The notes beneath the pieces were generated by a model. That model saw only the letters and a list, made by a program, of their open reading frames with translations. It was not told the origin of the DNA and made no database searches. Of a stretch of 64,000 nt of DNA, positions 7,640 through 39,259 are shown piece by piece. Where the stretch lies: contig NC_086373.1 of NCBI RefSeq assembly GCF_036588685.1, forward strand, positions 62,868,001 through 62,932,000, read 5' to 3'. The stretch is from Mytilus trossulus. Its lineage: Eukaryota. Each line of letters starts with the position of its first letter. The first letter of the stretch is position 1. Both the position numbers and the translations under genes were made by a program.

Positions 7640-10600
7640 ATGATGCACCAGAGAAGCTTAATTTATATTTCATTATTAATTTGTTCTTTACTATATATCG
7701 TAAAGAGTAAAGACGAGAACGACATAAATTTTGCAAGCAAACAAAGTGGATATGAAAAAGCAGACGACGCTTGGGACGAAGATGAGGATGACAAAAGTGA
7801 AGAAGATGTCGAAGAGGATGCCAAAGATGCAGATATGAAAGAGCAAGTTAAAAGAGACAATAATGGGAATTTTTACAGCTTTACAGTGCTTGATTCAGAA
7901 GGAAAGGGTGTTGACTTGGGGCAATACAAGGGAAAGGTAAGGTATCATTGTTGACATGTAATTGTTGAATTAAATGTACCTAGCATTACTAGGTTACCTT
8001 CTTTAAATAAGGGATTTTTATTTTATTATTATTATTATTTATGGTACACACAATACCATACCATACATAACGGTAAACCTCTATTAGGTTTTACCATGCA
8101 CTGTCTATTGAGCATTTGTCCACAGGAGTTTGAAATCCTATCAATAACGGAGTAAAAATATACCAAACTCGACTATCACAGTAGAGCTTCGCTCGCCAAC
8201 TCATCTATCACAGTAGACATGGTAGAGCTTCTCAAGTTTGAAATCCTATCAATAACAGGGTAAAATTATACCAAACTCTACTATCACAGTAGAGCTTCAC
8301 TTGCCAACTCATCTATCACAGTAGAGCTTCTTTTGTCGAAGAGAAGTTCTTCTGTGATAGTCTAGTTTGGTATATTTTTACCCCGTTATTGATAGGATTT
8401 CAAACTCCTGTGATTTGTCAGGCATTCAAGACACAGCAATCCTGTTATTTATATAATAAAGTAGTGCTTATAACATGTATAACGTGTATAATCGGTTCAT
8501 ACAGTGGAGATTGTATTGACCACTAAGCTCAGATTCTCAAGCTGTGGCATACTTTGCAAGAGTTTGATTTGTGGATGGCACATGTACAGTGTCACTGTCA
8601 GAGGTACATGTAGTTTTGGTGTACTGAGTTATTTTAATACATTATTTCAAGAGGCCAACTTACAGTTTTAACAATAAACAAGCTGCTATTGCAAGTTTCA
8701 AGTCTACATCACAGGGAGTCTATACTGTTTAACAAATTGTGAAAACATTTAGCTGGTACATGTACAAAATATCAAACATTTGCCACTGGACATTAATGAA
8801 ATATCCTCTTCCTCAAATGAGAAGAAAATCAAGATATACTCAAAGACAATTACTCTAATACAAGGCTTCTTCCAGTTACTTTGGACAAACACAATCCAAT
8901 GACTTTGTTTGAAACCGTTTTGAAATGTACATCCCAGATATGCATTTGAAATTTTCTTGGTGTTAAGACGAGTAATTATAACACTCTTTAATTTCCCTGT
9001 TTCAAGTTTTGTCTGGAATATTATATGAACATGTACATATATACAAATACATGTATTTAACACCACAATCCAATAGACCACTTTCGAGTTCATCCGTCAC
9101 CTGCAAAAACTAGTCAATTATGCACGCCTTTATGACGTCATTTACCAGATAGAGGGGCTCGCCTGTATCCCTGCACTATTTACGTTCATCAAGCGTCTTA
9201 GTGATCGTCTTTGTGCAGGATAAACTAGAAATAACCGTTGCTATGTAGGTACTTACTGACAATTCTCTATTGACAGCAGAGTTGATTGTCTATTTTCAGA
9301 ATTCAATTTGCCGAATAATTTGTACAATATAGAATTATAATTTTCCAACCACTCGCTCAACATTGGAAGGGAAGTGACGACGCCCCTAAACACACAGATG
9401 ACGGTGATAAAGGCGCGTATAATTGACGATTTTTTTCCGGTGACGGATGAACTCGAAAGTGGTCTATTAGAATGGAGACAATACATGTAGACTTGAAAAC
9501 CACCAAATTTTACAATGACAGTTGCTTACTTAAAACTTGTAAAATTCGTTATTTTATATTTGATTTTTCCTTATTTGATAAAGCTACATGAAAATATTAT
9601 TTATATTTTTAAGATAACATTGGTTGTTAATGTTGCATCAGAATGTGGATATACTGATAACCATTACAAAGCACTATCAAAGATACATAACCATTTAGTT
9701 ACAACTGGACGATTTTCAGTATTAGCCTTCCCATGCAACCAGTTTGGAAAACAAGAGCCAGGGGTAAGTACATATTTGCCTCTTAGTGTATAATTGACAG
9801 TAATATAGTTAAAAAAAGAGGTTGCTTTTCATGGTCGAATTTGTTGTTGCCATATACATTGATATATACCATACATCATGAAATTGTACAAAAAATGATG
9901 GTGGTGCAATAGACTATTTTGATTAAGTGGTGTTGTTAAACTAAAAAAGTTCAGGGCAATTCTATTCTGTGAACATTTCTTTTGGAAATTCTTTAAAAAG
10001 TTGAACTTAAATTTCCTTCTTGACAATTGGAGAGATAATTTTATAATTCTGATTGTATGACCAATGCTATACTAAGGACATCTGCATAAAGCAAGTCTTA
10101 TGAATTATGCTGATTAATTTGTAGATGATTGAATATAACAACTTTTGAATTATACATTAATGCAATAGGCACTTCTAGTAAGTTTGAAAATATCCTATTT
10201 TAAAGCAATGGAAAAAAAATACATACAAATAGCAACTTATTAAAATTTAAAGGAACTTTAAAAATCTTTTAAAAATCAATGAATGTCTGTCACCATACCA
10301 ACCATTTAATAACACTACAGGCTTCTGTTCATTTGAAACTCATATTTCCAGTTGAAATTTAGTGGCAGATCCAGAACTTTTCAAAAGGGGGGTGGGTGGG
10401 GGTTGATTGACCTAAAGGGGGGGGGGGGGGCTGGATCCACCTTGTTGTTAATTTTTGTGTCATTTTGGTCACTTGTGGACAGTTGTCTGCTTGGCAATCA
10501 TACCACATCTTCTTTTTTTATATTGAATCTACTTTTGAATTTATAAGGGCCAAACTTGGTTTCTAGATTACTTTATGGTTGTAAATTTGTTTTTCCTGGA

Positions 10601-21279: not shown

Positions 21280-21381
21280 GTGATCTAAAGATCAGTTTTT
21301 TGTCGGTTATTCTAATCCATTACCCTATTGTGTAGTTTCGTAATGAACCGTCATACTGACAATTCTCAATCTTAAGATCAC
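21280..21381 (-). promoter_or_regulatory. SECIS element 2 (SELENOP 3'UTR)
   Basis: On the minus strand, the outer helices are GTGATCT/AGATCAC and TGTC/GACA. The core is ATGAC (21354-21350) ... AGAA, helix II is GGTTCATTAC/GTAATGGATT, and the apical AAA precedes a CTA..TAG mini-stem. Confidence 0.88.
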
Positions 21382-21646: not shown

Positions 21647-24600
21647 TTACGAAAGCATGTGACTGTTCTGTCATCGTCAAGCCTGTGAATCATGGTGTCA
21701 AAGTCAAATACCATGTCCGTCATTTTCATTACGTCAATGGCACGCGCCTACTTGTCACTGACATCTTGTCTGTCAAGGTCAAAGCTGTCCATCCTGACGA
21801 CTCTCCTCTCATGTTTGTCCTGATGAAGTCAAGCCTTGTCATTGTCAGTCATTACCAACAGTGAGACATTGTCAAGTTCTGGTTGACCTACGACCAGAAC
21901 TAGGTCAAGAACAAACGTCTGCCTCGTAATGTTGTCCTGAACAGTGTCAGTTCAAAGATGGTCCCTCGCTATGTCACTGGCATCTCCTCTGACATCTTCA
22001 TGAAGGAGAACTACTTCTTGGACTGGTTCATTGGCATTGTTCTTCGTGACTCATGGTTGTTTGTCATTGTCAGCGTTCGTCTGATTGGTGACTTTGTCAT
22101 CGTATTTCAGCAGAGACAGTTTCACCAATTGGTCAGTTTCATGTAAGTTCTCCACTGTCTGAAGTTATGCATTGTCACATGCAGTTCCCAGATAAATGGT
22201 CTCACTGTCATGTCTTCGTTCCAGATTCGCTGTTTTGTCAGCGTCAAGGACTTGAAGTGCTCTTTGTTGAACATTGTCAAGGTCCGGAACTTTGTGATCA
22301 ATTGCATACTTGCTGGTTTGGTCACTGTCAGCTAACGTTATCACCCTCCGTCTGTCACGAGCATGTATCGTCTGTTTGAGGTCATGAACATATCTGAACA
22401 CCAGTCTCTTCAGTTAGTCACTGTCATGATGGGTTGGCTGATATATCCAAGGGTCACCTACAAGTAGCAGATGAGTTGGTTGCATGAAAATCACAAGGTC
22501 AGTCAGTCAAAAATTCTCAATTAGGTCTAGCAATTTCACTATGTAAAGAGTGACGTCTCAAAAATGAATCTCAGTTTAATCATACACATTCTTGAACAAC
22601 AGTCAAATTGAGCTCTTCACAAGAGCACAAGCCTAGTCTTTCAGGGAAAAACGCTTGTCTACAAGCACAGTTATTTTCTAGATCTGATGAAACGGAAGGA
22701 CAAACTCATGCGCGTCTGTTTCTTTGATTTTTATAATGTTTTTTCATAAAATTTCATAATTTTCTAATTACTTTATGCGTGGGTATTGGACGGTTTCATC
22801 TATTTCTAATTCAATTTGGTGTACGATTCATGTCTCGTACTGCTGATCTTCCCATTCCTACGACAATGGCGCTACCTCCAGATCTATGACTATGCGGACG
22901 TTCGTGGTTGTGTCTTCTACGACGTCGGTGTGATCTACGTAAACTGCGTTGACATCCGCATGGATCTGTATCGTATGCAGTACGGATTGCCCAATCTGTA
23001 AGATGGTAACGCAACAAGCTTGATGGAAATGGTATAAAGTAAACTAATTTGCCGCATCTGTGAACGAAAAAAGACTATATGTTTGGCTTTATAAGCGTAC
23101 GTATTGCATCCCTGCTGCATACCATTGTGCAAAGATTTAATAAGATATATATACATTATCGTTGCTATGTTCGCACACATTTCACTGTTACAAAATAAGT
23201 ATAACAAAGAGCTCCAACAATGATCAATTTAAATTGCAAGTAAATTTATATTGAATGTCATTAATCCTGATTATAACTTCATTGAATAGTAGTAATTGTT
23301 TTCTTAATTTTCTCGTTTAACGTTTATGCTCAGTTCAATAGCTATTTAACTATAGGAATCTTAAATATGTCCTCTGGTTGGATTGTCTTTTAGTAGCTCA
23401 CAATGCATCTATATTATAAATTGCTATGATTTATATGTTTTTTTAAAATTTTAAATGTACAGGAACCTGATATTCAGTGGTTGTCGTCTGTTAATGTGAT
23501 CCTTAAATGTTCTTGTTTCTCGGTTTTTCTATAGATTATACCATTGGTTTCCCGTTTGAATGGTTTTCCACTGGTAATTTTTGGGGCCTTTATTTCTTGT
23601 CTTCTATGAGAGCCATGGCTCCTTGTCGAAGACCTATATATTGGTTAACATTTTTACAAATTGTGACTTGGATAGAGAGTTGTCCCATTGGCACTCATAC
23701 TATATCTATATGATATAATATTGCAATATTTTTTCAATTCTTACAAATTGTGACTTGGATAGAGAGTTGTTCCATTGACGCTCATACTACATCTTCATTT
23801 ATCTATATGATAATATTGCAATATCTTATCAATTCTTACCTATCATATATCAATACGTCATCTTTTCCGCCATTTAGTTTATTCCATATGTTTGTAGTGC
23901 TTGTATCTTGGTACACAGGAAAGTTAGCTCTACTGGAAAGTTGTCCAATTTGTTCAGGAACTTCTTTGGAATTTACAATCATAAAACTGATTTCTGTACG
24001 GCCATGGGCGATGTATTCTTGACGAATAGTCTCAAGCCTACATTGTACACACATTAATTTATTTGAAGTAGTTTTAACAAATAAAGACGAATGAAAGGAG
24101 GGGATTAATTACACAGAGTACTAATTTCCTAAATACCTTTTTTTTGTATTTTTTCCCCAGTTTATTATCCCAGATACGATTCATTTTAACTCCTATCGAG
24201 CTGCCTAATCATGGAATCCCACTATAACCTACATCTCAAACTCGTATTTGATCTTACGAGTATTTGATACAATAATGTGATATAAGAAGTATAGGCATTT
24301 TTTCATTAATTAATAAAATCTTAAATCTAAAATTATCCAGACATAAACGTTTTTTTTTACTTTCAGACTGTTCATAGTTAATCATTTGAAATCTGTTGAA
24401 TGTGAAATGTGAAGAAAAGGAATAAGACAAATTCAAATATTACAAATTTGCAGTATTTGATTATAAACACAATCAATTTAAGTAAAGGAATTGATATTTT
24501 CAAATCCTTTCCCATACATGAGGATGTGGATGGGGGGTTTACAGAATACAAAATATTGGACAAAAAATAAAAGGTGTAAAAAAATAAACTTAATAGACGA

Positions 24601-24867
24601 AAATGCTTTACACGTATAACACCATTCACTATAGCAATCCGTAAATATTCATCTAATAAATGATAACACATACCCTGCCGCTTGTTGCTGACACATGGGT
24701 CATGTAGCCAGCAGTAGTGACACTACTGTTACTTTGCCACGCGTGTCCAGCATCGGCTGATCTCCACTGGGGGTTCGCCAGGTTGGTGGATCCTGACAGA
24801 ACCTTCCAGATACGCTGACAAGTAAAGCAGCAGCGAGCAACCCGGTCAACATACCGGGGCTCCTCAT
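21647..24867 (-). CDS. SELENOP: Selenoprotein P, 600 aa, with 45 in-frame UGA (Sec) codons
   Basis: Coding exons 24867-24674, 24037-23840 and 23057-21647 are GT/AG with phases 2/2 and total 1803 nt. The protein has a signal peptide, then FCQDPPTW..DQPMLDTRGKVTVVSLLLAT-U-PMC (UxxC, TGA at 24702-24700) and IWNKLNGGKDDVLIYDRCGKLVY, collinear with the vertebrate SelP_N domain. An Arg/His-rich linker follows, then 44 more TGA codons with no TAA/TAG until the TAA at 21649-21647. Two SECIS elements lie downstream. Confidence 0.97.
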
Positions 24868-25909
24868 TGTTCCTCTTCTGAAAGAAAAGAAAAATGAGTT
24901 AACTAAATATCTGTCATTAAGCTAAACGAAAGGTATTTCTATTGGCCGGGTTTACAACAAAATCATTATAATATGAAGCTTCGTAAAAATAAATTGAAGG
25001 TAATATGAAAAAAATTATCAAAGGTACCAGGATTATGATTTAATACGCCAGACGCGCGTTTCGTCTACATAAGACTCATCAGTTACGCTCCGATCAAAAT
25101 AGTTATAAAAACAAACAAGTACAAAGTTGAAGACATTGATACTCATGAAAGTTAAACATTGCAAACATGTTTATATATTTTTACGTAAACCCCGAATAAA
25201 AATACGTACAAAGAACGGGGAATTAGTTCAAGTCAATATACATTTACATCTATGTGTTGCAATAAACGTTCTGAACGAGTGAAATGTTGAACTTTGAAAA
25301 TGCCTGTACTAAGTCAGGAACATGACTGTTGTTGTCGATTCGTTTGATTTGTTTTATAATTTGATTTTACCATTTGGTTAGGGACTTTCCGTTTTGAATT
25401 TTTCTCGGAGTTCAGTATTTTTGTGATTTTACTTTTTGGTCACAATTTTACAATGATCACTATTTTCAGCATAAGGCCCCTTACTAAAAGCAATTTTATT
25501 TTTTATTGACACAATTGTTGTCTACATTTTTTCTATGATGGAGCTTCCGTAAAAGATTAATTGTGTAACTAACTGTGTAAACTTCTTGTGTTGTGGTTAG
25601 AAGCAACCCACTTATACTTTAACAAATATATCCGGAAAGTTCGTTATTGTAAATAATGTAATTGCCAAAGTAAAAAAAATAATATAACGCTTAGTTTAAG
25701 ATTAATTTCATCAGAGATTCTAGGCTTACAATAATTATGTTATCTTTATGCACGCGTTGTCTACAAAAGACTCATCAGTAAAGTTTTAACTAAAAAGTTG
25801 AAGGCCATAGTTGAAAATTATATTTAGTTCTTCCAACAAAAAAGTTCTGTAATAGAGAGCACAGAATATAAATGGCTTTAGCTAAAATGTAAATTAACCA
25901 CATGATTAT

Positions 25910-37290: not shown

Positions 37291-38025
37291 GCATCTGGTG
37301 CAAGAAAATTGGTACCTTTTATTTTATTACTACCACTGGGTCGATGCCTCTGCTGGTGGACTATTAGTCCCCGAGGGTATCACCAGCCCAGTAGCCAGTA
37401 CTTCGGTACTGGCATGAAAATACGGATTTTTTGTGTTAAAATTTGCTGTTACAAAATATTAGAAATTATTTTAAATTAAGGAATGTATCTCCCTCATGCA
37501 AAGCTCTGATTCCTTTCACTGATTTGGCTATACTTTTTGGACCTTTTGGATTAAAGCTCTTCATCTTTTATATAAGCTTTGGATTTCAAATATTTTGGCC
37601 ACGAGCATCACTGAAGAGACATGTATTGTCGAAATGCGCATCTGGTGCAAGAAAATTGGTACCGTTAATTTTATTACTACCACTGGGTCGATGCCTCTGC
37701 TGGTGGACTATTAGTCCCCGAGGGTATCACCAGCCCAGTAGCCAGTACTTCGGTACTGGCATGAACATATGGATTTTTTGTGTTAAAATTTGCTGTTACA
37801 AAATATTAGAAATTATTTTAAATTAAGGAATGTATCTCCCTCATGCAAAGCTCTGATTCCTTTCACTGATTTGGCTATACTTTTTGGACCTTTTGGATTA
37901 AAGCTCTTCATCTTTTATATAAGCTTTGGATTTCAAATATTTTGGCCACGAGCATCACTGAAGAGACATGTATTGTCGAAATGCGCATCTGGTGCAAGAA
38001 AATTGGTACCGTTAATTTTATTACT
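37291..38025. repeat. Head-to-tail 347-bp duplication of an interspersed repeat
   Basis: GCATCTGGTGCAAGAAAATTGGTACC recurs at 37291, 37638 and 37985, and the units are nearly identical. It is related, in reverse orientation, to the repeat at ~30110-30390. Confidence 0.85.
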
Positions 38026-39259
38026 CGTTTTTCGTCCCTTTTCTTGAAATGATAGTCAGACAGAGTTGCAGTCGTTGGTACTACGATACATGTATAATCA
38101 ATATGTCTGTGAGTTACTTTCGTTTGAATTGTCACACGTTTACATTTGTGATTTCGGTGTCTTTTATAGTGGACTATGTGTTGTGGGCTTCATTGTAAGT
38201 GAAGGCCGTACGGCGGTGACCTATACGTGTGCATAGGGGGCTCACGGGTCTAAATCATTTATTTTATTTATTTAATATAGGATTTCTCTATATTTTTCTA
38301 TAACTGAACTTTATCTTATACTTAATAGAAAAATGAAATAAAAAAAATAGGGTCACCGTTCATTTACACTCAAACTCTGCCTCCGAAAGAAGCATACATT
38401 CTTGTAAATGTCTTTTTTTCTCTGTTGAACAAATAGAAGAAATACTGAGCGGTAATATCGAAATAAAAAAATAACTGACATAACTGAATATTACAGAAAT
38501 CGCGTAAATTTTACAATTATTTAGGTTATGTACTTATTCGAAAACAACAATAAACAATATAGGTCACCAATGAGTTAAAAAGATATTTCAATGTTAATGC
38601 CAAAAAATGCATTTTTGCACCAAAGGGAGATAATTTGGAGCTTTTTCAATGATATCTACATTTCAAAAGTCACCTGGGTTTAACACGAATTAAATTTTTG
38701 GAATAATTTTTGTACCATATGATAAAGATCGATAAAGTTACAACTAATTAAGGTAATACATAAAATTTGTAATGAAAAAATAATGTTTATTTTTTTCCCT
38801 GAAAATCTTATACCACCCGCGAGCCTTCTATGTTATCCATGTGTTAATTTAATCAGGTAATTGGCAGGAAATTATGCTTATTAAAATAAGGACGTATATG
38901 ACTAACATTTACGTCCTTGATTAAAATTTGATGTGAATATCCTAAAACAGTGCACTTTACTTGTTTCCGATTTCTACGGTTACTAGTACTGCTTTTGGCA
39001 TATTAACAAATATGCAAGCCACTAGCAACAGACACATAATTATTATAAAGGAATGATGTAAACAAAGCCATGTGACACAGTCACATGTATTTGTTGATAT
39101 ATATTTTTAAACCAATCAAAATTATTCTAATTTTACGAACACCAATCAAACAGAGTTATAATCTTCAGTGCCGAAACATTTTTTCTACTTCCTGCAAAAT
39201 ATAAACAATTACGCACAAACCAAAACAAAGGAAAGTGAAAAGTGAAAAATTGTTAAAAC

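Follow-up and report, generated by a model that had tools for sequence, protein, structure and literature searches.

The 64,000 nucleotides of Mytilus trossulus DNA analysed here (contig NC_086373.1, positions 62,868,001 to 62,932,000; hereafter the window) very probably carry on their minus strand the Mytilus selenoprotein P (SELENOP) gene. The predicted product is a secreted protein of 600 residues in which UGA1 and 44 further UGA codons in the tail would be read as selenocysteine (Sec), a reading to which we assign a probability of roughly 0.93.

Gene model, N-terminal domain and public annotation

The coding exons and their landmarks are listed below by window position or, for the two parts of the tail, by residue.

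24867-24674, minus strand: coding exon 1, with the ATG, the N-terminus, the start of SelP_N and UGA1 (codon 56)
24702-24700, minus strand: UGA1, codon 56, within the U-P-M-C redox motif of exon 1
24037-23840, minus strand: coding exon 2, the core of the SelP_N thioredoxin-like domain
23057-21647, minus strand: coding exon 3, with the SelP_N end, the His/Arg-rich linker, the proximal Sec/Cys region and the distal dyad array
Residues 213-331: proximal Sec/Cys region, 8 UGA and 8 Cys; a distinct block, conserved in all five full-length relatives
Residues 332-600: distal dyad array, 36 UGA
21649-21647, minus strand: TAA terminator that ends the 600-codon frame

Rebuilding the exons from the sequence gave canonical introns (GTATGT..TAG and GTAAGA..CAG), and the joined three-exon frame runs for 600 codons to the TAA with 45 in-frame TGA codons and no TAA or TAG. 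One TGA is codon 56; the other 44 are spread over codons 213-593 and belong exclusively to exon 3. This agrees to the base with the first-pass annotation of this DNA, which had proposed a minus-strand frame of this length with the same number and placement of TGA codons. A likely splice acceptor lies 10 nt 5' of the ATG, which points to a further, predicted exon carrying the 5'UTR.

The stop codon content of exon 3 is peculiar to one frame. Over its 469 codons, frame 0 has 44 TGA, 0 TAA and 0 TAG, and the corresponding counts in the alternative frames are 8/4/5 and 13/7/17. When the 388-codon tail was shuffled with its dinucleotides preserved, none of 5000 sequences reached 44 in-frame TGA codons (mean 18.3, sd 3.8, max 32), and again none of the 5000 was free of TAA and TAG (mean 7.4, minimum 1). 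Codons 213-331 have a GC content of 0.35, and given the base composition of this part the absence of TAA and TAG has a probability of ~0.001. The earlier suggestion that a last exon free of TAA and TAG is not expected by chance therefore holds, for the AT-rich proximal part as well. All three sections of exon 3, N-terminal, proximal and distal, share one pattern of GC by codon position, with the lowest value at position 3.

Each exon was searched separately against Pfam, and all three matched SelP_N (PF04592), with 28.1, 36.0 and 23.5 bits against a cut-off of 23.2 bits (E-values of 1.6e-6 for exon 1 and 6.1e-9 for exon 2). The matches cover profile positions 3-35, 47-116 and 118-160 and are thus collinear on the profile. 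The TGA at codon 56 is followed by P-M-C, which makes a U-x-x-C redox motif, and the same column reads W-P-M-C in four of the relatives described below (P0121, P0002, P0122 and P0022). The N-terminus encoded by exon 1 is hydrophobic and, judged by eye, resembles a signal peptide. Residues from about 170 to 190 are rich in Arg and His and include a block, R-R-R-R-H-N-H-E-R, that is kept in mytilid relatives. The SelP_N fold, the His-rich linker and the Sec-rich tail that had been named as marks of SELENOP in this frame are thus all found, the last as 44 UGA codons whose aligned positions in relatives hold W or C, with a single P.

The distal part of the tail is built of 24 (U/C)-x-(U/C) dyads, spaced mostly 7-10 residues apart, with abundant Ser, Gln and Thr. 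Neither Tandem Repeats Finder nor self-BLAST detected a DNA-level tandem repeat in the tail, indicating that the dyad array is old and diverged rather than a recent expansion.

The gene is already represented in public databases, in a much reduced form. A HMMER search with exon 2 (1.84 billion representatives) retrieved RefSeq XP_063396993.1, a 155-aa 'selenoprotein P-like' entry from Mytilus trossulus that equals residues 58-212 of our model exactly. It is the same gene, started after UGA1 and ended at UGA2, and so leaves out the putative signal peptide, the redox Sec of codon 56 and the 388-codon tail of the present model. Because the identity extends across the exons, both splice junctions agree with the NCBI gene model. 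Other public Mytilus models behave likewise: they are 55, 114, 155, 209 or 217 aa long and end at UGA1, at UGA2 or before UGA2. Truncation of this kind had been predicted, with ends at residue 55 or 212, and is indeed what standard annotation has produced.

Conservation of the tail in bivalve relatives and in a second copy

The exon 2 search gave 97 relatives at E<=1e-3. Five full-length proteins of 590-623 aa were obtained (P0002, P0121, P0122, P0018 and P0022), encoded by contigs of 2.2-3.3 kb from ENA and Logan. Trp had been assigned to TGA in these contigs by the public gene caller, and W is taken below, at the protein level, as a presumptive TGA. SelP_N was recognized in P0121, P0002 and P0022 with E-values of 1e-33 to 1e-38 (129.5 bits for P0121); no match to Pfam SelP_C turned up in the relatives. 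The closest comparison is with P0121, a 599-aa protein of a congener, which uses the same start Met and is identical to the window exons at 55/64, 61/65 and 426/468 positions. Its 2264-nt contig is too short to accommodate 1.4 kb of introns and so has its source in a transcript, and the collinearity of P0121 with the window supports the splice junctions and an uninterrupted exon 3 in the congener.

All five relatives align collinearly with exon 3 through the entire tail. At the 44 columns where the window has a tail TGA they read as follows.

P0121: W 44, C 0, other 0
P0002: W 41, C 3, other 0
P0122: W 29, C 15, other 0
P0018: W 32, C 11, other 1 (P)
P0022: W 37, C 7, other 0

From this pattern we strongly infer that W at the TGA columns of the relatives stands for TGA, and hence for Sec. 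The converse exchange also occurs, as several Cys columns of the window are W in the relatives. Exchange of TGA with TGY at fixed columns had been proposed as a check on the reading frame, and the outcome is positive both in this alignment and, at one codon, between the two mussel copies described below. P0121 has ~48 presumptive UGA codons, and the close Mytilus relatives range over ~45-48. We conclude from the sequences that close relatives, and possibly alleles too, differ in Sec count through a drift of single Cys/Sec steps.

Outside this group the family was met at greater distance. When metagenomes were scanned with P0002, the only SelP_N genes to emerge were distant ones (L006 and L007, 35-42% identity). 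One of these, at positions 3593-4018 of L006 (11.9-kb marine metagenome contig Ga0114996_10007892), is an apparently intron-less SelP_N homologue with 35% identity to residues 3-144 of the mussel-type protein.

We also considered whether codons 213-331 could be a hidden intron. This was rejected: the protein is conserved here in the five relatives, including those from transcript-sized contigs, and the GC periodicity of coding sequence is kept.

The same genome assembly holds the gene a second time.

G000:C27:1333796-1337005 (L005 2796-6005): second SELENOP copy, with a SelP_N match and 46 TGA

The locus containing this copy (L005) and the window are 97.4% identical over 4.4 kb, introns included, and the 4.08-Mb contig on which it lies (C27) is collinear with the flanks of the window for at least 30 kb at 88-98% identity. 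On the strength of these collinear flanks and of an identity that extends to the introns, the C27 copy is probably an uncollapsed haplotype, or else a very recent segmental duplication. Its coding sequence is free of indels and departs from that of the window by 16 substitutions in 1803 nt (99.1% identity). The introns differ by 8 indels in 1418 nt; at this rate 10 would be expected in the coding sequence, and the probability of finding none is ~4e-5. The second copy keeps all 45 TGA codons and has one more at codon 570, where the window has TGC.

An insertion and several repeats were also noted. Just 5' of the start-codon exon, C27 carries an insertion of ~1.86 kb whose ends share a 10-bp overlap. 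In the window, a type I hammerhead motif is found at 25045-25088 on the minus strand, also 5' of the start-codon exon (RF00163, 28.5 bits, gathering score 34), and a similar CTGATGAG motif occurs near 25780; the hammerhead motif probably belongs to a Penelope-like or retrozyme-type repeat, of a sort common in bivalves. Two high-copy repeats are located at 37292-38026 and 9060-9470 of the window. A repeat unit of ~735 bp forms tandem arrays on many chromosomes (93-98% identity), and a repeat element of ~400 bp shows terminal inverted similarity and is present in dozens of copies (95-97% identity).

Proposed decoding of the UGA codons

The predicted 3'UTR is compact, at ~400 nt, and contains the following elements.

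21559-21462, minus strand: SECIS 1 (proximal), putative, modelled by hand
21362-21300, minus strand: SECIS 2 (distal), Rfam SECIS_1 (RF00031) over the full model length
21250-21245, minus strand: AATAAA polyadenylation signal, ~50 nt past SECIS 2, identified from sequence only

The first-pass annotation had counted two SECIS elements among the marks of SELENOP. SECIS 2 is an Rfam match of 34.7 bits (E=3.6e-4), which is 0.3 below the gathering score of 35; the folding z-score is -3.4, and the landmarks are a core AUGA at 21354-21351, an apical AAA near 21338 and a 3' AGAA at 21313-21310. The core and helices of this element are identical in the C27 copy. The SECIS 1 region gave no match to a Rfam SECIS model, only weak C/D-box snoRNA matches over its AUGAUGA...CUGA letters. 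In the hand model a 20-bp helix I leads to a core AUGA at 21534-21531 that faces a matching 3' UGAC at 21492-21489, and an apical AAA lies at 21518-21516, 12 nt past the AUGA. The fold is the minimum free energy structure (z=-3.0), in which the core stays unpaired. It has the same geometry as the SECIS_1 consensus of Rfam, and the C27 copy differs at two bases, both unpaired. We regard SECIS 1 as likely, not proven, to be genuine.

The genome contains two tRNA-Sec genes, scoring 77-80 bits (C9:67288420-67288505 and C1:41171809-41171894). Elsewhere, two long tandem arrays with periods of ~891 and ~900 bp, of which at least 49 units are listed, occupy G000:C10:63843916-64492367. Their unit includes an 81-nt tRNA-like sequence that scores 45.9 bits on the tRNA-Sec model (cut-off 47), and these are likely long-variable-arm tRNA genes, not tRNA-Sec.

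The nucleotide that follows UGA divides exon 3 into two zones (window 21668-22813, minus strand). The first 7 UGA codons are followed by A, G or T, never by C, but C comes next in 31 of the 37 distal ones, an excess with a binomial P of ~4e-12 when C makes up 28% of codon position 1 in the background. Among the relatives, Q, H, P or R follows 71-93% of the distal W residues and a smaller share, 30-60%, of the distal Cys. At this protein level the two-zone pattern is largely common to the five bivalve relatives, with P0018 departing from it in the proximal zone. It would fit a built-in design of a gate followed by a processive zone, in which the context after each UGA would tune the competition between release factor and Sec-tRNA.

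It could be argued that only the N-terminal part is made, with termination at UGA1 or UGA2, and that the stretch rich in TGA is left over from an ancestral tail and is not translated. Every public Mytilus annotation does stop at or before UGA2, the seven proximal UGAs lack a following C, and UGA1 decoding in the oyster is reportedly inefficient, at about 5%, with distal UGAs near 100%. However, untranslated DNA would not hold one frame clear of TAA, TAG and indels, nor would it keep the two SECIS elements (one of them hand-modelled) or a tail whose protein sequence is conserved across bivalves down to 36% identity with 44 columns restricted to W and C. We therefore consider this very improbable. 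Decoding of the UGAs as Trp, Cys or Arg by near-cognate tRNAs, in place of Sec, is less probable still. Public gene callers did obtain open frames by taking TGA as Trp, and most of the distal UGAs stand in UGA-C, the leakiest eukaryotic stop context. Yet where the gene does encode Trp it uses TGG, and this in the N-terminal domain only, with no TGG anywhere in the window tail. When a TGA column is exchanged, the partner is Cys, chemically analogous to Sec, rather than an aromatic residue. SECIS candidates follow the gene, the genome supplies tRNA-Sec, and UxxC falls on the redox position of SelP_N. A decaying pseudogene or a chance open frame in AT-rich DNA, for which nothing speaks beyond the presence of the stop codons themselves, is effectively refuted by the shuffles, which matched neither the TGA excess nor the lack of TAA and TAG, and by the maintenance of the frame in two copies and five species.

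The Sec reading of the frame suggests a mechanism along lines worked out in other animals. In mammalian SELENOP, UGA1 is a bottleneck and later UGAs are decoded processively, and in the mouse SECIS 2 serves mainly UGA1 and SECIS 1 the processive UGA-rich zone (PMC5727441). By analogy with vertebrates and the oyster, UGA in the mussel would be redefined through SECISBP2 and eEFSec, the latter with Sec-tRNA, both brought in by the SECIS elements, and the two elements of the 3'UTR would direct Sec reading of the 44 tail UGAs. UGA1 would act as a slow gate, as in vertebrate and oyster SELENOP, and ribosomes that pass it would decode the later UGAs processively. From the same analogues we infer translation through the UGAs and a physiological role for mussel SELENOP, in which the Sec/Cys dyad array would be a high-capacity selenium store or the transport form of a secreted protein.

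Relation to known selenoprotein P

Mussel SELENOP has a close counterpart in the Pacific oyster (Magallana gigas), described by Baclaocos et al. 2019 (J Mol Biol 431:4381), a paper further cited in PMC13134290. According to two other articles that draw on it, oyster SelenoP has 46 Sec and a bivalve protein up to 132 (Baclaocos et al. 2019, via PMC8230778), and no other metazoan group has as many Sec residues in SelP as bivalves (PMC8557442, citing Baclaocos et al. 2019). The count of about 46 for the Pacific oyster, which the first-pass annotation had given, matches PMC8230778. Like the mussel protein, that of the oyster combines SelP_N, a UxxC motif and a very long Sec-rich tail, its two 3'UTR SECIS elements correspond to the two mussel candidates, and the UGA counts are close: 46 in the oyster compared with 45 (window) or 46 (C27) in the mussel. 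The oyster-group protein P0022, which falls in a 90% cluster with a Saccostrea 'selenoprotein Pb-like' entry, is collinear with the mussel gene. Full-length translation and ribosome profiling have reportedly been described for the oyster. The mussel belongs to a different family (Mytilidae), and the tails are about 36-50% identical.

Vertebrate SELENOP and the mussel gene agree in domain order, in having a U-x-x-C motif and a His-rich linker, and in a U-x-U-type C-terminal end; the two SECIS elements of vertebrates have their counterpart in the mussel candidates. In contrast, the human protein has 10 Sec, so that the mussel has 4.5 times more, and vertebrate SELENOP has neither the regular 24-dyad (U/C)-x-(U/C) tail nor the extra conserved proximal Sec/Cys region (213-331).

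Multi-Sec bivalve SELENOP has thus been known since 2019, and the mussel gene is a mis-annotated member of this family and no new phenomenon; it leaves the picture of recoding, as established for bivalve SelenoP in 2019, unchanged. Two features might set it apart from a routine family member, although we think it rather doubtful that both do: standing Sec/Cys variation within mussel populations, and gate and processive zones tuned by UGA context. The difference between the copies at codon 570, together with the spread of UGA counts among close Mytilus relatives, suggests that Sec/Cys exchange may exist as standing variation within populations and not only between species. The pair of copies with 45 and 46 UGA codons is a natural contrast of Sec with Cys.

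The consequence for mussel biology lies mainly in the annotation. Current Mytilus gene models shrink a predicted 600-residue, 45-Sec protein to fragments of 55-217 residues, and this truncation hides what would be the main selenium-carrying protein of a sentinel and aquaculture animal from proteomics and expression studies. The corrected model opens the way to a gene-level study of mussel selenium biology and possibly of mercury or cadmium handling.
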